Shown piece after piece: positions 1,761-36,178 of a stretch of 64,000 nt of DNA; positions within the stretch are counted from its first letter, which is position 1; each line of letters opens with the position of its first letter. Below the pieces are notes generated by a model. The model had not been told where the DNA came from. It worked only from the letters and a program-made list of their open reading frames with translations, and did no database searches. Position numbers and translations under genes: made by a program. The stretch is from sequence record PP942979.1, one strand, 5' to 3'.

Positions 1761-2096
1761 ATGGGTAACCAGCATCGTTATGTAGCTTCGGTAGAACGTC
1801 GCTTTTATGGACCTCAATGGTTGGCGCTATGCGACCTGATTAAGGTAGAGCCTCAGACGTGTGGTGCGTTCGCAAAGAACGGCCATATGATGGGACTGAC
1901 TCTGCCTAAAGAGTTTGATGTTGAAGCTGCAACAAAGAGCCTGCGCCTTGTCTACGCAGTCAAGGAAGAAGACGTGGCCGTGCGCTGTTACCTGTTCGGT
2001 ACTCGCTACTACAAGTTCGTTTTCTTTGAACAAACAATTGCCGTAAGCGAGGATGATTATGAGAACGTTCGCAAACGTACCAGCGCGAGTCAATGA
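1761..2096 (+). CDS. Hypothetical protein
   Basis: 111-aa ORF divergent from primase. Confidence 0.75.
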   Translation: MGNQHRYVASVERRFYGPQWLALCDLIKVEPQTCGAFAKNGHMMGLTLPKEFDVEAATKSLRLVYAVKEEDVAVRCYLFGTRYYKFVFFEQTIAVSEDDYENVRKRTSASQ

Positions 2097-3144
2097 TACC
2101 CGCGCTCTGTCTCGCATAGGCAAGATGATCGATGCGGCACTCGACGTAAAAAATCAAGAGAAGCGCTGGCCAAAGAAACGCGTCAGCCCTTCAATGTTTC
2201 CTATCTGCGCGATTCAAGAAACTGCCAAACTGATTTACCAGAAGCACAACAAGTGCATGACAGGTGAGTCTGGTACGTTGCTGAACATCTTTGCGAAAGC
2301 AGGGACAGGGATGCACGAATCGTTACAGAACGCACTGGGTCATAGTGGTCAGATGGTTGGCCACTGGAAATGTACGAACGAAAAATGCCCTGAATACCCA
2401 AAGACCAAAGGTAAAATGGTTGACGGTAAATATAAGAAGGGCAAGTACACGCGAACTCGAAGCACGAACAATCGCTGTCCGACGTGTGATAAACCCATGG
2501 CTTATGCAGAACTAAAAGTCCTGTATAAGTCACTCAAGGGTTACGTCGATGGACTGATCGATAATCTTGATGGCACGTATAGCCTGATCGATTTGAAATC
2601 GACTATGGTGACCAAAGCTGCTGACGGATCTTTCTTCGTTAAGTATCACCGCTTCCAGATCGCAACATACGCATACCTGCTGAAAAAACGTTACGGTTAC
2701 AACATCGTGGACTATACCCTGGTTTACGTGCCACGCGACAACCCGAAGAAGTTTGTCGAAAAGACCTTTGTGTTTGACGAGGCAGAGTCGAAACGTGCCA
2801 AAGACTTTATGATGGAACAAATACGCGCATGGGATGCTGCGGTAAAATCGGCGCGCACTGGTGATCTGCTGCCAGCTATTAAACGAAAGCCGTGCAAGAG
2901 CGCTGAGTATTATTGGGACGAGTTCCACGGATATGACACATGCCCTTTTGTTGACTATTGCTTTATTCAATCACACATGATTGACTTCATGAAGAAGTTA
3001 GAGCAGCGAATCATGGCCAACCCCGACCTAACTTATATGGAAATTGTAAGCACTGGTCGGAAAACTCAACAACAAGGTCTGCTGCCGGACAAGCCGAAGA
3101 AGTCGCAACGTCCGAAGCATATCGTAAAAACATTTGAGCTATGA
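2059..3144 (+). CDS. Cas4/RecB-like PD-(D/E)XK exonuclease with Cys clusters
   Basis: SPSMFPIC...GTGMH, GYVDGL..IDLKS, FQIATYA, C-terminal PC...CPFVDYC; start uncertain (2053/2059/2125). Confidence 0.75.
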   Translation: MRTFANVPARVNDTRALSRIGKMIDAALDVKNQEKRWPKKRVSPSMFPICAIQETAKLIYQKHNKCMTGESGTLLNIFAKAGTGMHESLQNALGHSGQMVGHWKCTNEKCPEYPKTKGKMVDGKYKKGKYTRTRSTNNRCPTCDKPMAYAELKVLYKSLKGYVDGLIDNLDGTYSLIDLKSTMVTKAADGSFFVKYHRFQIATYAYLLKKRYGYNIVDYTLVYVPRDNPKKFVEKTFVFDEAESKRAKDFMMEQIRAWDAAVKSARTGDLLPAIKRKPCKSAEYYWDEFHGYDTCPFVDYCFIQSHMIDFMKKLEQRIMANPDLTYMEIVSTGRKTQQQGLLPDKPKKSQRPKHIVKTFEL

Positions 3145-7305: not shown

Positions 7306-7831
7306 TGTTATTCTGTTTGACAATCAGAAAGACTGGGAAGACTTCGGTAGCGCGGTCTACGAAGAATTTCGTCTGAACGTGATGACAGGCAGTAGCAGCG
7401 CCAGTCAGATTCCTACAGTCGCACCGTTCGAAGACGTGAAACACCAACTCAGTTATTCGAACATTCTGCCTGAGGGTGAGCAATCGCCTATCGTTGTGCT
7501 GGACATCCTGATCATGGAAGTTGAACTGGCCGAAGGTGAATCGCGCAACTATAATGCAGACAGTCTGGACGAAGCTGTGCGCAAAGTTGTATCACTGTAT
7601 CAGGCTCGCGCTCGTGATCTAGACTGCCACCTGACTGGTAACTTCATTACTGCCGATCATAAAGTTAATGGTGCGCTGTTGCGTATCTACCGTAATCAGG
7701 ACTTCGTGTGCAAAGGCCATCCTGAACTTCTGCACGGACGTCCTCTGGGCATGTTCCATTGTGACAAGTGCGGTGAGATGCAAATGGCCGGAGCATTCCA
7801 CTTGCCTAAAGAGGAAACTCAAAATGGTTAA
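7298..7831 (+). CDS. Hypothetical protein with C-terminal CxxH...CxxC
   Basis: MSDVILFD start overlaps upstream stop; VCKGHP...FHCDKCG. Confidence 0.75.
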   Translation: MSDVILFDNQKDWEDFGSAVYEEFRLNVMTGSSSASQIPTVAPFEDVKHQLSYSNILPEGEQSPIVVLDILIMEVELAEGESRNYNADSLDEAVRKVVSLYQARARDLDCHLTGNFITADHKVNGALLRIYRNQDFVCKGHPELLHGRPLGMFHCDKCGEMQMAGAFHLPKEETQNG

Positions 7832-8291
7832 AGGCGGACTGTGGCGCGTCTTCCCTGATTACGACTCAGAGGAGATGCTGCTCAAACTCGGTGCTGCTAT
7901 CGGTATCGACCGTGACAGTGATGACGTGCCTGATGAATTGCACGTTACTCTGGCTTACGATGAATCGAACCCTGACGTTGAAGCAGAGCAAAACGATGCG
8001 GGCCAGTTCTTTGGCACCGTTGCCTCTGCTGAATTGTTCGGCGAAGGTCAAGATAAGATTCTGGTGCTCGTACTCGAATCGCCTGACCTGCAACAGGAAC
8101 ACGCTCGTATTCATGCGTGTGGTGCTGCCAAGTTTGCGCACACTCCATACCGCCCGCATGTGACGTTACTCAAACATGCAAAAGACAGCCAAGCTGAATA
8201 TCTCAACCAGATCATTCAGCATCCGGGCCGTCCTCCAATCACTCTGCGCTTCATCGAAGAAGATCGCAAGGTGCTGGAGAAGCGTAGCTAA
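7824..8291 (+). CDS. 2H phosphoesterase, Acb1 (T4 gp57B)-like
   Basis: Two HxT motifs (LHVTLAY, YRPHVTL); LVLVLESPDLQQEH resembles Acb1 LVLVLDSEYLRCRH; similar size. Confidence 0.75.
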   Translation: MVKGGLWRVFPDYDSEEMLLKLGAAIGIDRDSDDVPDELHVTLAYDESNPDVEAEQNDAGQFFGTVASAELFGEGQDKILVLVLESPDLQQEHARIHACGAAKFAHTPYRPHVTLLKHAKDSQAEYLNQIIQHPGRPPITLRFIEEDRKVLEKRS

Positions 8292-27798: not shown

Positions 27799-28203
27799 AT
27801 GAAACAGTACCCGCAACGTGGCCGTGTGTACACACTGAAAGAAATTGAGAACGACCTTGAACTGCGTGACACTCCGTTCTTGCGCTTCGTACCGCAGAAA
27901 GTACGTTACGTTGGAATGCCTGCTGGTATTCAGGTCATTCAGCAGGCGCACATTGCTGACCTGTCTGAGCTTGAGGGTTGGGCAGACACCAAATGGTCTT
28001 ACGTGCGTGAGACCGAAGAATGGATTCCGCTGTTCCGTGCTGTAGACGATGCTACAATCGAATCGCTCTGTGTTATCGAGCCTGACGTGTCGCAGTTCCG
28101 TTCTGACAACACGTTGTTCATCTACCCGAAAGGCACTGAGTGCAAACAGTATGATGGGTACGATGAAGCAGTTCACGGCGATCTGCTTGAACGCGACGAA
28201 TAA
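27799..28203 (+). CDS. Hypothetical protein
   Basis: GAGGAG RBS within a 20-nt block identical to that of 26997. Confidence 0.75.
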   Translation: MKQYPQRGRVYTLKEIENDLELRDTPFLRFVPQKVRYVGMPAGIQVIQQAHIADLSELEGWADTKWSYVRETEEWIPLFRAVDDATIESLCVIEPDVSQFRSDNTLFIYPKGTECKQYDGYDEAVHGDLLERDE

Positions 28204-31498: not shown

Positions 31499-31701
31499 AC
31501 AGACGAATGATCGCTTTGCTTGCGCTGGTGATCTTCTGCTTGGTGGGAGCAGTTGCTTCCGCCGAAGCAGCAAACCACTACAACATTATGTTGTGTCTTG
31601 GCCTGACACTTATGTTTCTGGCAGGCTTCTTTATCTGTGTAGAATGTTTCCGTAAGACTTCGTGGGAACAACAAAACAAAAAGGACAAAAAGAATGGCTA
31701 A
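31495..31701 (+). CDS. Small membrane protein (two hydrophobic segments)
   Basis: ALLALVIFCLVGAVA and IMLCLGLTLMFLAGFFICV. Confidence 0.7.
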   Translation: MNRRMIALLALVIFCLVGAVASAEAANHYNIMLCLGLTLMFLAGFFICVECFRKTSWEQQNKKDKKNG

Positions 31702-32227
31702 ATCACTCGGCGTTTACCTGACGTATGTTCTGCGCCACAAGCCTCAGGATATTGGTATCGCTATGGACACGCAGGGCTGGGTGTCGGTCTCTGACCTGTT
31801 AGAGAAAGCGAAGTATGTTAAGCCAGTCACTCTCGATATGTTAGTCGCAGAAGTAGACGCAGACGAGAAGGGTCGCTTTGAGTTCAATCGTGACCAGACA
31901 AAGATTCGCTGTGTTCAGGGGCACTCGGTCGAGCATGTTATCATCAACATGGAAGAATGGACTGAGTTGGCTCCACTGTATCACGGCACGGCAGAAAAGA
32001 ACGTGTCGTCAATCATGCACGAAGGTATTCTGAAACGCAAACGCAAGCACGTCCATATCAGCAACGATATTGAAACGGCGCAGCGTGTTGGTCAACGTCA
32101 CGGAGAACCTGTTGTGTTTGAGATTGACGCTCGGGCCATGATCACTCACGGCTACAAGTTCTACCGAGCAGAAAACGGTGTTATCCTAACTGACCACGTA
32201 CCGTCCCGATATATCAAGTTGGTGTAG
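31694..32227 (+). CDS. kptA: RNA 2'-phosphotransferase (Tpt1/KptA family)
   Basis: YVLRH.P..IGI.MD.QGWV, KGRFE, IRCVQGHS, LYHGT, RKHVHIS, G.RHG, NGV.LT..VP. Confidence 0.92.
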   Translation: MAKSLGVYLTYVLRHKPQDIGIAMDTQGWVSVSDLLEKAKYVKPVTLDMLVAEVDADEKGRFEFNRDQTKIRCVQGHSVEHVIINMEEWTELAPLYHGTAEKNVSSIMHEGILKRKRKHVHISNDIETAQRVGQRHGEPVVFEIDARAMITHGYKFYRAENGVILTDHVPSRYIKLV

Positions 32228-32229
32228 TT

Positions 32230-32631
32230 ATGGAAAAGACGTACATGAGTCATTGGGGATCGCGCTATGTGCGGTCGTCATCGGGACGATGGTTCTCAGT
32301 TCATGGACGTGAAGGAACAATGGTGACCAATCGGTATGGAACGACGTTCTACCGTAGCGGTTCAGAAGTGTGGCGCGACATAACCAAAGGGTGGGAGATA
32401 GCTCTGGAGCGCGAACTGCATAGTCGAACTCGAAAGGACTTTGAGGCGATTAATGAGAAGTTCCTTCACTGGGGTAAGATAATCAGAACGATGATTGAGC
32501 AAGGGATCGCAGAGAACAACCAGCATACTCAAGACTTAGCTGAGATGCTTGAGGCGCAGCGCATCAAATCTTACGGACCCAAAATCGAGCAACTACGCAT
32601 AATACTGGATGAAACAGCCATTAAAAGCTGA
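32230..32631 (+). CDS. Hypothetical protein
   Basis: 133-aa ORF. Confidence 0.7.
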   Translation: MEKTYMSHWGSRYVRSSSGRWFSVHGREGTMVTNRYGTTFYRSGSEVWRDITKGWEIALERELHSRTRKDFEAINEKFLHWGKIIRTMIEQGIAENNQHTQDLAEMLEAQRIKSYGPKIEQLRIILDETAIKS

Positions 32632-32649
32632 GTCTGATTGTGTTATAAT
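32599..32649 (+). promoter_or_regulatory. Box + extended -10 promoter overlapping the end of the upstream CDS
   Basis: ATAATACTGGATGAAACAGCC ... TGT-TATAAT at the conserved spacing. Confidence 0.65.
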
Positions 32650-32698
32650 AGAGATGAACGCTAGACATTCGTTTAGCTACTTACATGAGGATATGTAT

Positions 32699-33034
32699 AT
32701 GAAAAAGTCAAAAGTTAAAGCAGAAGTTGTTGCACCTACTATTGAAGGCCGCCCATTCACTTTGTACAACGCCTCGCCTATTCCTGAGGTATCAGAAACA
32801 CCATTCGCTGATCGTGATACATTTCTTCCTATGCTGCGTAAAGTTCAGGACGCTGCTCAACTGGAACGCATTCGTGGTTTATCCTGCTGTCCGTATTGCC
32901 GTGAGACAATGATGCTTGGTGAATACACCAAAGACAACTGGCTCTGGTCATACTGCTATCAGCACATGATTGAGCACCACAACGTAACGCCGTCCGCAGA
33001 ATTTATTGCTTACGTCGAAGCTGCTTCCAAGTAA
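32699..33034 (+). CDS. Hypothetical protein with CCPYC and H...H residues (possible metal binding)
   Basis: TGAGG RBS before MKKSKV. Confidence 0.7.
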   Translation: MKKSKVKAEVVAPTIEGRPFTLYNASPIPEVSETPFADRDTFLPMLRKVQDAAQLERIRGLSCCPYCRETMMLGEYTKDNWLWSYCYQHMIEHHNVTPSAEFIAYVEAASK

Positions 33035-33060: not shown

Positions 33061-34467
33061 ATGAAAAAGATTAAACACACCTTCCGCCTGACTGACTTGG
33101 TTCGTATTGCCGATGAACTTCCTTCGACCAAGAGCGCTTTCACTTCTGGTGAAGATGCAATTGTTGTTGGTCGTGATGAAACAGAAGATAAGTATAAACT
33201 TCACATCAAGCATGAAGGCGAATGTGCTTGGTATCACGCAGAGCACCTGACGCTGATTAAACACAATCAGAGCGAATTGCTCGACAAGTGGGAAGCCGGT
33301 AAGTACGGCAAGAAGAAAAAGAAAGAGCGCAAGATTCCTGACGAACTGCGCAACTTCACCGCTATTCTGCCTGTGACCTGTAACGCTGATTGCTCTTTCT
33401 GTCCTGAGAAAGAGATGGAGAATAAAGCAGATCAGAAAGCGTGGTCAAACAATCTGATTGCTGCGATTAAGGCACATGGCCATCGCGTTGACCACGTATC
33501 AATCTCTGGCGGTGAGCCTACACTTCGCATGAAGTACCTGTTCGAAACGATCGACCGCATTCGTGCTGAAACAGGTATGCGTAAAGTGGGTCTGACTTCT
33601 AACGGTCAGTTCCTTGAGAAGCACAATCAAACAATGACGTTCCTCGATCTTAACACGGACGAGATGCTGGAGAGCAAGCTATCGCATCTGAATATCAGTA
33701 TGCACTCATTCGACCGTGAGAAAGCAAACAAGATCATGGGCGTCAAGTATACGTGGACGATTGAAGACCTGGTTCGCTTCCGCCGTCAGTTAGGGCGCAA
33801 GCTGAGTTTCCACATCAACTTCGTTATCAACAAAGAGAACATCGACAGCATCGAGTGGGAGTTTCGTCAGGCAAACGAGTTCATGAAAGCAAACCCGTGG
33901 ATAGACGTTGTGTTCCGTGTTGACTACGACAATAAGAAACTAAGCAAAGAACTGCGCAAGTATGGTCAAGCTGTACAGGCTGCGCGTGAAGAAAAGCGTC
34001 CGCGTGATAAGAGCATCAAGTATACTCCTAAGAAAGTCAAAGAACCTGAACTGATTAAACTGTTCAACTCTATCTTTGACGGCAGCTATTACGACGAACT
34101 GACGGAAGAAACTCTGCCTGGTTTCGGTGACACGTTTACTACAGGCTGCCCGTCCTGCTTCACGCATCGTAGTACCGATCTCGGTAACAGCTTTGCGTAT
34201 CTGAAAGCGTCTTCATACGAACCGAACGAAGACGAAGAAGAATATACTGAGATGGTATTCCACATGGACGGCAGCCTGTACTTCGACTGGTCGCGCAAAG
34301 AGCCTGTACCAGAAGTGAAAGCGAAGAAGGCTAAACCTCTGCCTCGTTTGAAGAAAGCTAAGAAGGCTGAACCGAAAGGTTATCCTGATAGCTGCGACTT
34401 TGGTTCTTCTCGTTGTGGATTCACTGGCGGTAACGGGCGTTGTGGTTTCGGTAGCGGCATGTGCTAA
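33061..34467 (+). CDS. Radical SAM protein with N-terminal extra domain and Cys/Gly-rich C-terminal tail
   Basis: CNADCSFC (CX3CX2C), ISGGEPTL, TSNG, LNISMHS. Confidence 0.85.
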   Translation: MKKIKHTFRLTDLVRIADELPSTKSAFTSGEDAIVVGRDETEDKYKLHIKHEGECAWYHAEHLTLIKHNQSELLDKWEAGKYGKKKKKERKIPDELRNFTAILPVTCNADCSFCPEKEMENKADQKAWSNNLIAAIKAHGHRVDHVSISGGEPTLRMKYLFETIDRIRAETGMRKVGLTSNGQFLEKHNQTMTFLDLNTDEMLESKLSHLNISMHSFDREKANKIMGVKYTWTIEDLVRFRRQLGRKLSFHINFVINKENIDSIEWEFRQANEFMKANPWIDVVFRVDYDNKKLSKELRKYGQAVQAAREEKRPRDKSIKYTPKKVKEPELIKLFNSIFDGSYYDELTEETLPGFGDTFTTGCPSCFTHRSTDLGNSFAYLKASSYEPNEDEEEYTEMVFHMDGSLYFDWSRKEPVPEVKAKKAKPLPRLKKAKKAEPKGYPDSCDFGSSRCGFTGGNGRCGFGSGMC

Positions 34468-34482
34468 TAGGAAAAACTAAAA

Positions 34483-35088
34483 ATGGCTACTCAATTAGAA
34501 GTGAACAAGTTCCTGACCGAGTTTGAAAAGAAATTCCGTCAATCTATCCCGCTGCTTGGGCAGGAAGAGTTCTTTGCTTGTGTGCTTGAGCAAACCAATC
34601 GTGAAAGCTACATCGTGTGTCTTGAGGACGAATCGCTTCTTGAGATGTTTGAGCAGGAAGAGTCTGGCCCGTTAAGTGGTTTCGAGTTCCTTGAAAACGA
34701 ACTAGATCGGATAGAAGCTGAGTTGGACCAAGACCCTGGCTTCCGCGTTCTGCGTATTGCGTTTGCAAACTGGGCAGGAACAACCAAAGAGCTGGAGAAC
34801 ATTATGCTCTGTGTTATGGACGAGATGGGTTTTGATCTGGATGATCATCCTGAACTTATTATTGAACCTGTGGTTGAAATCAAACTGAATGCAGACGAAT
34901 TGAAAGCACTGTTCTCGGTAGTTCAGGAATATACAGGACCCGAAGTTCATCGTCTGTATGCGATGTATATCGTTCGTAAGCTGGAGCGTGTTGCTACAGG
35001 CCGTCCTCTGCTAGAGAAGTTCGCGTACCTCAATAAGTCTAGCAGTGAACAGGAACTCAAGACCGTTCTTGCTGAGATGGGAGAATAG
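34483..35088 (+). CDS. Acidic hypothetical protein
   Basis: 201-aa ORF. Confidence 0.75.
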   Translation: MATQLEVNKFLTEFEKKFRQSIPLLGQEEFFACVLEQTNRESYIVCLEDESLLEMFEQEESGPLSGFEFLENELDRIEAELDQDPGFRVLRIAFANWAGTTKELENIMLCVMDEMGFDLDDHPELIIEPVVEIKLNADELKALFSVVQEYTGPEVHRLYAMYIVRKLERVATGRPLLEKFAYLNKSSSEQELKTVLAEMGE

Positions 35089-35914: not shown

Positions 35915-36178
35915 ATGGCTGTAGGCTTTGTGAAAGACGATGGCGTAAACGATACCATCGAAACAAACGTAATGAACGAGATTGACCGCGCTCGTTCTGA
36001 ACTTCAAGGCGTAGGTTCTGATTACTGCGTCAACCCTGACTGCGGTGAAAAGATTCCTGTGATGCGTAAGCTCGCTATGCCGAATGCGCGTTACTGCATT
36101 AACTGTCAGGCAAGTCACGATGGTTCTGCTCATGCTGGCTACAATCGTCGTGGCTCCAAAGACTCTCAATTGAGGTAG
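35915..36178 (+). CDS. TraR/DksA C4 zinc-finger protein, YbiI-like
   Basis: C....CGEKIP..R..AMP.ARYCINCQ; C-terminus GYNRRGSKDSQLR as in E. coli YbiI. Confidence 0.9.
   Translation: MAVGFVKDDGVNDTIETNVMNEIDRARSELQGVGSDYCVNPDCGEKIPVMRKLAMPNARYCINCQASHDGSAHAGYNRRGSKDSQLR

Follow-up and report, generated by a model that had tools for sequence, protein, structure and literature searches.

The stretch of DNA analysed here, referred to as the window in the following, comprises 64,000 nucleotides and is part of the genome of the Erwinia phage phB78 (PP942979.1), a member of the genus Alexandravirus with a genome size of 261.8 kb. Position 33061 of the window, equal to position 219061 of the record, is the first base of SHZ78_265, a gene annotated in GenBank as 'putative radical SAM superfamily protein' (SAM, S-adenosylmethionine). 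The gene encodes one of the MoaA/SkfB-like radical SAM enzymes of a large family that is borne by phages and has no name as yet; these enzymes carry their own short cysteine peptide on a long, flexible tether. The original prediction, made for this DNA from its letters alone, had drawn attention to the C-terminal peptide. The peptide is not peculiar to phB78 but defines the family as a whole.

Domain plan of SHZ78_265

The open reading frame (ORF) of SHZ78_265 is intact and its translation is not interrupted. An alternative in-frame ATG is present two codons upstream (33055), the GenBank start being 33061. The gene lies within a long run of genes on the same strand, most of which are not annotated. 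Structural features are given according to an AlphaFold2 model, which was calculated from an alignment of 51 sequences and has a mean predicted local distance difference test (pLDDT) value of 83.5. The following parts can be distinguished:

33061..34467, + strand: whole gene, 468 amino acids plus stop codon (SHZ78_265)
33061..33315, + strand: N-terminal domain of about 85 amino acids; predicted five-stranded beta barrel (amino acids 13-67, AlphaFold2); no Pfam match
33352..33930, + strand: radical SAM partial (beta/alpha)6 barrel, amino acids 98-290; PF04055; AlphaFold2 pLDDT >90; Foldseek matches viperin and MoaA
33379..33402, + strand: CX3CX2C motif of the SAM-binding [4Fe-4S] cluster, reading CNADCSFC (C107, C111 and C114; amino acids 107-114); family-invariant
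33508..33516, + strand: GGE motif, amino acids 150-152, part of the SAM-binding site; family-invariant
33931..34125, + strand: helical and partly disordered connector, amino acids 291-355; length variable among relatives
34126..34296, + strand: small C-terminal beta domain, amino acids 356-412; ends in the conserved FHxDGxLYxDW(S)R
34147..34158, + strand: CPSC (C363 and C366; amino acids 363-366), at the turn of the first predicted beta hairpin; family-invariant
34297..34392, + strand: disordered tether rich in Lys, Pro and Ala, amino acids 413-444; AlphaFold2 pLDDT 35-56
34393..34464, + strand: terminal cysteine peptide CDFGSSRCGFTGGNGRCGFGSGMC, the last 24 amino acids; four Cys, three C-x-F units, eight Gly

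SHZ78_265 is clearly a radical SAM protein. It possesses the CX3CX2C motif, the Pfam profile Radical_SAM (PF04055) matches amino acids 105-265 with 54.7 bits (cut-off 29.5), six beta/alpha units are predicted, and Foldseek gives a probability of 1.00 against many radical SAM structures. The three cysteines of the motif are invariant among 51 and 57 aligned relatives. A lysine-rich connector joins the barrel to the additional N-terminal domain, which had been recognized before from the sequence and is real. It is clade-specific, its occurrence being confined to the Alexandravirus/Sasquatchvirus/Yersinia-phage clade. The Yersinia phage fHe-Yen9-02 encodes a free-standing copy of this domain with 90 amino acids (L012 3717-3989; 42% identity, E 2e-14) and also carries the domain fused to a radical SAM protein. 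Structure matches in BFVD suggest more free-standing copies, for instance in Klebsiella phage Miami.

Between barrel and tail, the protein possesses only two cysteines, namely C363 and C366 of the CPSC motif, which does not fit the SPASM motif, as the original prediction had stated. The CPSC motif is a candidate half-site of an auxiliary metal centre. The motif itself and the Lys/Pro linker were found as previously described. In the terminal peptide CDFGSSRCGFTGGNGRCGFGSGMC, the translation of 34393-34464 bears out the four cysteines and the three C-x-F units. The number of glycines, which had been given as seven, had to be corrected to eight. The cysteines form two pairs (C445/C452 and C461/C468), and C468 is the last residue of the protein.

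The confidence of the phB78 model falls from about residue 420 on, and all of the chain beyond residue 435 has pLDDT values below 50. A second AlphaFold model, that of P0113, a compact relative of 291 amino acids, exhibits the same domain plan and again an undocked tail. The original prediction had proposed AlphaFold as a test of whether the tail enters the active site; neither of the two models places it there.

When the residues of SHZ78_265 were shuffled in 20000 trials, three or more C-x-[FYW] units within 24 amino acids occurred in 13 of them. The motif of the tail was also sought elsewhere in the window and was found in no other real gene. The recurrence of the tail in nearly every homolog and its ratio of nonsynonymous to synonymous substitution rates (dN/dS) of 0.17, both described in the next section, are far stronger evidence than this shuffle statistic. 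Taken together, the data exclude the trivial readings that the tail is a low-complexity end arisen by chance, that it stems from faulty annotation or that it is an appendage of a single lineage.

Fused and detached tails in phage relatives

A tblastn search detected the gene in 49 phage records, nearly all of them from jumbo phages of Erwinia, Dickeya and Yersinia (Alexandravirus/Sasquatchvirus group). All 11 relatives that were translated possess a tail of the same type at their end, with diverging sequences:

SNUABM_1: ends ...SCNYSSPCSYSRGSSCSFGSGMC
Y3: ends ...DCVYYPRSGCSYARTGVGSCQF
Alexandra and SNUABM_16: terminal Cys pair VCGYGxSRCGY, preceded at a distance of about 43 residues by a first pair (RCSFGPAAPHHCSY)
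Yersinia phage: ends SCDYGYSRCGY

The original prediction had asked for an alignment of homologs to see whether the tail is conserved but variable, and this is what we found. The cysteines and the position two residues after them are conserved; motif number, tether length and the remainder of the tail sequence differ even among close relatives. The linker varies freely in both length and sequence, as illustrated by an insertion of 30 residues in AD1, 2910A and SNUABM_33. Within the jumbo-phage clade the motif can be written as C-x-[YF], since Tyr or Phe follows two residues after the cysteine in 125 of about 145 motifs. The middle residue is Gly in only about 40% of them, and SNUABM_1, AD1 and Y3 have motifs without any Gly (C-N-Y, C-S-Y, C-S-F, C-V-Y or C-Q-F only).

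Selection was estimated by the method of Nei and Gojobori over eight close relatives of the Alexandravirus clade. The dN/dS values are 0.35 for the N-terminal domain, 0.17 for the tail, 0.11 for the linker, 0.086 for the radical SAM core and 0.04 for the small C-terminal beta domain, which is the most constrained part of the gene. The value of 0.17 indicates that the tail is translated and under purifying selection.

The family extends far beyond these cultured phages. A search of 5.8 billion proteins revealed 61 relatives, many of them on contigs of 190-330 kb; wherever a source is named, it is a phage. In a profile search against 1.84 billion cluster representatives, 4957 matches were obtained at E <= 1e-3, 517 at E <= 1e-10 (each a family cluster at 50% identity) and 105 at E <= 1e-30. 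A scan of IMG/VR detected relatives on viral contigs of 9-388 kb. From phage genomes, viral contigs and metagenome contigs we assembled a set of 193 non-redundant members, for which CX3CX2C, a later C[PATS]xC and a D/E-W motif were required; the following family statistics are therefore based on regular-expression anchors and not on a curated alignment. The common plan of the members consists of the CX3CX2C core, an invariant CPxC in a small beta domain, a charged and disordered tether and a terminal cysteine peptide.

Tail cysteines are present in 179 of the 193 members and absent in 14 (about 7%). After the DW motif, 84 members possess two cysteines, 42 four, 22 three and 14 none, and the number ranges up to 10; among the tailed members it is even in 138 cases and odd in 41. 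The last cysteine is located 0-2 residues from the C-terminus in 159 of the 179 tailed members, and the last two cysteines are 4-8 residues apart, most often 6. Gly follows a tail cysteine 314 times, and the preceding residue is mostly Gly, Ser or Arg. Outside the jumbo-phage clade the tail motif is [GS]-C-G. In the family as a whole, many tails end in RCGY or RCGF. The tether, measured from the DW motif to the penultimate cysteine, has a minimum of 21 residues, a 5th percentile of 26 and a median of 54 and can exceed 130 residues; it is rich in Lys (12.9%) and Glu (9.5%). The CPxC pair represents the only invariant cysteines outside the SAM motif in three alignments (51, 57 and 22 members), and two cysteine columns of the tail are invariant or nearly so. 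The tail is thus a mobile cysteine-pair peptide that is anchored at the C-terminus and co-occurs with an invariant half-site of two cysteines. Since this design is common to hundreds of phage enzymes, the tail appears to be a real functional partner of the enzyme.

Some members (P0052-P0058 and P0063-P0066) have long tails with up to 10 cysteines and runs such as GCGGGCG or SCGGGGCGGG. These runs resemble the Gly/Cys-rich cores of azole-type peptides, for instance microcin B17. No cyclodehydratase was seen near the enzyme in L017 and L018.

In the 14 tail-less members, the protein stops within a few residues of the DW motif. We read the flanking DNA of six of them and found the following arrangements:

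L013: the next ORF (101 amino acids) encodes a coiled coil, a KKTVKK stretch and then ...SGCTRSTRCG
L095: an ORF of 65 amino acids, starting three bases past the stop codon of the enzyme gene, encodes a helix, KKTKKEK and then GCGSGGCGHGSPARSCGSGGC
L103: an ORF of 79 amino acids, two genes downstream, encodes a Lys/Arg-rich stretch and then GGCRSGGCYRDLNQGRCGGGGGRC
L106: an ORF of 78 amino acids, whose start overlaps the stop codon of the enzyme gene, encodes a helix, a KKKK stretch and then NCGRGGDGHC
L105: the upstream ORF has the motif at its N-terminus and begins with ECGGGYSYGGCGNNSVGCSNYSY
L104 (JGI contig Ga0224513_10003449): no tail ORF was called; a single stop codon ends the enzyme ORF and is followed in frame by a short Cys-Gly motif

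Hence, the motif is located on a neighbouring ORF in five of the six cases, four times downstream and once upstream. The arrangement of L013 is repeated in a second, independent sample (L014). The layout of L104 could be due to a recent truncation, a sequencing error or read-through. These split forms identify the cysteine peptide as a separable module that is genetically linked to the enzyme.

Neighbouring genes

An all-against-all comparison of the flanks of 33 diverse loci revealed no gene that is conserved beside the enzyme across the family; the recurring neighbours are local to single clades. The enzyme together with its peptide therefore looks self-contained. The neighbours of interest in phB78 are:

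31694..32227, + strand: RNA 2'-phosphotransferase (Tpt1/KptA-like), upstream of SHZ78_265 by two to three genes
35915..36178, + strand: DksA/TraR-type C4 zinc-finger gene, 1.4 kb downstream
27799-28203: SHZ78_254, a hypothetical protein of 134 amino acids without Pfam match

The Tpt1 gene recurs upstream of the enzyme in the jumbo clade only, namely in phB78, Y3, AD1, a Yersinia phage and two jumbo contigs from IMG/VR. An RNA ligase is annotated at window positions 7824-8291, and together with Tpt1 it makes an RNA-repair or RNA-modification theme possible. A DksA/TraR gene directly follows the radical SAM gene in L033 (6413-6670) and L034 (6224-6481) and is found about 330 bases after it in L041 (6471-6728). 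Two distant jumbo contigs carry a homolog of SHZ78_254 (L015 5404-5733 and L016 5577-5999; 36-42% identity) as the gene directly upstream of that for the enzyme, and it is possible that SHZ78_254 is a functional partner of the enzyme.

The two ORFs flanking SHZ78_265 (32609-33034 and 34483-35088) are each weakly similar to Y3_275 (35% identity over about 70 amino acids), which is located just downstream of the radical SAM homolog of Y3. By their sequences, these two ORFs may be diverged paralogs. Finally, GenBank annotates a 'CRISPR/Cas system associated-protein' at window positions 2059-3144, adjoining a putative primase.

Kinship with named enzymes and possible roles of the tail

Pfam, NCBIfam, PHROGs and PADLOC returned only the generic radical SAM core or a weak match to the pVip core, and Pfam, NCBIfam and PHROGs contain no curated model of the family beyond the generic domain. 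A search of the literature for radical SAM enzymes of phages that bear a Cys-rich tail or a fused precursor yielded nothing on the family; the AD1 paper merely lists the gene. There is thus neither a curated family nor a published account of this architecture that we could find, the enzyme class being already known.

The best named sequence matches of SHZ78_265 are MoaA, HxsC and viperin, with scores several-fold below the cut-offs, and the same applies to ten members of the wider family. Identity with MoaA, HxsC, viperin, NrdG, PflA, YydG, PqqE or a sactisynthase was rejected, since all curated scores are far below cut-off. For MoaA (GTP 3',8-cyclase), the best NCBIfam match, we obtained 58.2 bits with TIGR02668 (cut-off 325), 56.4 with NF001199 (231) and 49.9 with TIGR02666 (284). 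Viperin/pVip models scored 48.2 bits (NF038283; cut-off 180) and 24.6 bits (TIGR04278; cut-off 450), and the PADLOC match to pVip spans only positions 9-151 of the 257 positions of the profile. The annotation of the Y3 homolog as 'GTP 3',8-cyclase MoaA' (L009 1501-2844, KY984068.1) is consequently not justified and appears to be an over-annotation, as the MoaA scores of the family reach about one fifth of the cut-offs. The JGI name 'organic radical activating enzyme', given to two family members, is likewise unsupported by the membership tests.

When the family profile was compared to PDB sequences, viperins, YydG, MoaA and SuiB were matched over the core only; for the C-terminal domain, used as a single sequence or as a profile of 31 members, PDB sequences yielded nothing significant. 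Structural comparison of the phB78 model yielded viperin, matched over about 200 residues, and MoaA, matched over about 330 columns with a high root-mean-square deviation. For the compact P0113 model MoaA is the best match (TMq 0.60-0.63, about 280 columns), followed by SuiB, SkfB (0.60), BlsE and viperin-like enzymes. Although viperin/pVip is the top match in sequence and structure for the SAM-binding core, this match is limited to about 150-200 core residues, and the nucleotide-binding C-terminal extension of viperin lies outside it.

The kinship with MoaA and SkfB goes further, since here the partial (beta/alpha)6 barrel is also followed by a small domain of beta hairpin and helix that carries a CxxC. 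The C-terminal auxiliary cluster motif of MoaA comprises three cysteines (CX2CX13C). In the phage family, however, no third conserved cysteine follows the CPxC; its C-terminal domain keeps two cysteines only, and these are located at the hairpin turn. Moreover, MoaA and SkfB have no tethered cysteine tail, and the RRE (RiPP recognition element; RiPP, peptide made by ribosomes and modified after translation) domain of SkfB is absent from the phage family. MoaA and SkfB are twitch enzymes, in which a single auxiliary cluster is bound by the domain of hairpin and helix that follows the barrel, and twitch domains are recognized by three to four cysteines before the hairpin, after the hairpin and after the helix (PMC6231123). 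In SHZ78_265, the predicted order of hairpin (359-370), strand, helix (388-391) and strand is compatible with this topology, but there are only two conserved cysteines, both at the hairpin turn. The auxiliary cluster of MoaA is held by three cysteines and has an open iron that binds GTP (PMC6231123), and in the SPASM enzyme CteB the open iron of an auxiliary cluster binds a cysteine of the peptide substrate (PMC6231123; see also PMC10177961). Membership in the SPASM class itself, whose seven-cysteine motif reads CX9-15GX4C-gap-CX2CX5CX3C-gap-C (PMC6231123), was rejected, C363 and C366 being the sole cysteines between barrel and tail.

The original prediction had drawn a connection to the maturases of sactipeptides and ranthipeptides (CteB, AlbA, PapB, SkfB), which are also radical SAM enzymes acting on Cys-rich peptides. 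This connection does not hold at the level of family membership. The phage family lacks both the SPASM seven-cysteine motif and an RRE, and its scores amount to tens of bits against cut-offs of 600-650; weak matches to hidden Markov models were obtained for GggB, WgkB, CefB and StsB. In addition, the substrates of these maturases are bound via a leader, whereas in the phage family the substrate would be tethered.

A closer parallel in layout is provided by the borosins, alpha-N-methyltransferases of the OphMA type (fused) and of the SonM/SonA type (split), in which fused and split layouts likewise occur within one enzyme family. Some lineages of borosins carry the core peptide as the C-terminal end of the enzyme, and in others it is encoded by a separate small gene next to that of the enzyme (10.1101/2021.12.24.474128; PMC8429565). 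The phage family shows the same with 179 fused and 14 tail-less members, the likeness being one of layout only. The two groups are not homologous, borosins transfer a methyl group of SAM instead of using radical SAM chemistry, and they belong to fungal and bacterial natural-product pathways with a downstream protease, whereas no protease is linked to the phage family. The general layout of a RiPP system is present as well: a linked short peptide, conserved cysteines and +1/+2 positions in an otherwise variable sequence, and split ORFs. No RRE or peptidase match was found in the enzyme or its neighbours.

We tentatively favour the possibility that the tail is a tethered peptide substrate, which docks its thiolates at the CPxC auxiliary site in a borosin-like layout. 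Several observations led us to prefer this reading. The fixed positions in a variable background are RiPP-like, as in core peptides; the number of motifs varies; the split mini-genes consist of helix, spacer and core; the tether has a lower length bound and is charged and disordered like a swinging arm; and no other gene is linked to the enzyme. The fold kinship with MoaA and SkfB and the borosin precedent for fused and split forms were also counted in its favour.

The data show the plan of the domains, their conservation and selection, the disorder of the tail, the existence of split forms and the distribution among phages. For such a substrate we further infer an auxiliary site, docking of the tail and a reaction on it, which might proceed in four steps. 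As expected from family membership, the CX3CX2C cluster would first cleave SAM to yield the 5'-deoxyadenosyl radical. The small beta domain, placed over the open side of the barrel, would offer the two cysteines of CPxC to an auxiliary metal or Fe-S site. The terminal cysteine pair would then swing in, so that its thiolates bind the incomplete CPxC site and a neighbouring residue faces the radical. This residue would be Gly in most of the family, and in the jumbo clade Gly, Ser or Asn and then Phe or Tyr. Finally, the tail would react as the enzyme's own tethered substrate, the likeliest product being a thioether or another cross-link next to the cysteine. The count of two plus two cysteines follows from the CPxC being the only conserved cysteines in the C-terminal domain.

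Several points weigh against a tethered substrate. No modification of the tail has been observed so far, and AlphaFold leaves the tail undocked with pLDDT <50 in both models (phB78 and P0113). The pairing of the cysteines is no less suited to disulfide chemistry or to the binding of a metal than to the formation of a thioether. The CPxC is located at the hairpin turn and not at the canonical twitch ligand positions (PMC6231123). Neither a protease nor an exporter nor a recognition-element match was found nearby. A 1:1 fusion of enzyme and substrate is costly, with no obvious gain for the phage from a modified tail. Finally, the substrates of MoaA and viperin, the closest relatives that have a name, are nucleotides and not peptides.

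The pairing of the cysteines and the kinship with MoaA and viperin speak for two other explanations. According to the first, which we regard as rather unlikely, the tail cysteines are cofactor ligands that complete a four-cysteine auxiliary Fe-S (or Zn) site together with CPxC, and the tail undergoes no chemistry. The site would then serve electron transfer or the placing of a separate substrate, possibly a nucleotide. The CPxC as the sole invariant cysteine pair outside the SAM motif and the near-invariance of at least two tail cysteines are in line with this, as are the modal tail cysteine number of two, followed by four, and the glycines after the cysteines, which are generally frequent around metal sites. 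The fold is also nearest to that of MoaA, whose auxiliary cluster has three cysteines and an open site (PMC6231123). On the other hand, structural ligands would be unusual on a disordered tether that drifts in composition and measures 21 to more than 130 residues. A set of ligands would not normally range from 2 to 10 cysteines or move to a separate ORF in several lineages, and AlphaFold usually gathers cysteine clusters, yet leaves the tail free in two models.

The original prediction had offered a substrate in cis and an auxiliary metal site as alternatives. Both survive, and the split forms speak for a discrete partner peptide more than for a structural site built into the enzyme. The two alternatives may be two sides of one mechanism, because CPxC provides two cysteines and the tail nearly always at least two more.

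The second explanation, a redox shuttle arm like that of class I/II ribonucleotide reductases (RNR), appears unlikely. Here, the C-terminal dithiol would reduce a radical intermediate of a separate substrate by giving two electrons or hydrogen atoms and would be re-reduced by host thioredoxin or glutaredoxin. The paired cysteines, with even numbers in 138 members against odd numbers in 41, the last cysteine 0-2 residues from the C-terminus and a disordered tether able to reach the active site all fit this role. The pattern C-x(4-8)-C-x(0-2)-COOH resembles the RNR tail, which also has two cysteines a few residues apart, 2-3 residues or less from the C-terminus, on a disordered arm; in our family this corresponds to the 159 of 179 members mentioned above and to pLDDT <50. 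A shuttle would also suit phage nucleotide metabolism, nucleotides being the substrates of viperin and MoaA, the closest cores that have a name, but all curated viperin and MoaA scores are far below cut-off. Furthermore, the conserved Gly or aromatic residue beside each cysteine would be left without a role, and up to five cysteine pairs per tail seem excessive. RNR belongs to an unrelated superfamily, and its tails are not known to be repeated, to bear a Gly/aromatic signature or to occur detached from the enzyme; nor are split versions that have a coiled-coil helix but no redoxin fold known for tails of this type.

Still less probable is a non-catalytic role, in which the tail would be a docking or targeting motif for a protein, a nucleic acid or the virion and the basic tether would bind nucleic acid. 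This could account for the Lys/Arg-rich tethers and split peptides, for one family member located beside tail-sheath genes and for the RNA-related neighbours in the jumbo clade (Tpt1, with the RNA ligase elsewhere in the window). However, the tail is conserved together with the invariant CPxC and strictly linked to the enzyme, either fused or adjacent, which points to a role at the enzyme itself, and the comparison of flanks revealed no partner gene that is conserved.

A glycyl-type (C-alpha) radical site in the tail, which would make the protein its own activase in the manner of a fused mini NrdG/NrdD or PflA/PflB, is very improbable: the cluster region is related to that of NrdG and PflA (NrdG2 E 9e-9, PflA 1.4e-5), C-G occurs at nearly every motif in the wider family, two members bear the JGI label mentioned above, and the common endings RCGY and RCGF would echo the R-V-C-G-Y radical loop, but Gly is not conserved in the jumbo clade and is absent from the motifs of SNUABM_1, AD1 and Y3, the scores of glycyl-radical activases cover only the N-terminal cluster region and were rejected as far below cut-off (NrdG2 34.9 bits vs 131, PFLA 24.6 vs 232, NrdG 21.3 vs 126), and a stable radical generally needs a buried and structured finger instead of a tail that is predicted to be disordered.

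Returning to the tail as a tethered substrate, it is possible, though we put this forward with even more reserve, that the enzymes constitute a phage-wide family of self-modifying radical SAM proteins, a counterpart of the borosins. A core peptide, tethered or encoded by a mini-gene, would complete a two-cysteine Fe-S site and would then be cross-linked, and the modified tail would act as a built-in cofactor or as a peptide that is released or displayed during infection.

To our knowledge, radical SAM enzymes are common in phage genomes, but besides QueE and NrdG almost none of them has a known function. The cysteine peptide, be it tethered or encoded next door, provides a concrete and checkable hypothesis about the substrate or the cofactor of such an enzyme. 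If the tail is a substrate, this would be the first case of a radical SAM system that has its core peptide fused to it, and a RiPP-like pathway that is native to phages. If it is a ligand or a redox arm, it would represent a new design of an auxiliary site, made of a CPxC half-site and a mobile arm. With either outcome, thousands of virome annotations as 'radical SAM domain protein' could be sorted and misannotations like that of Y3 could be corrected. There is a sizeable chance that the family carries new chemistry.

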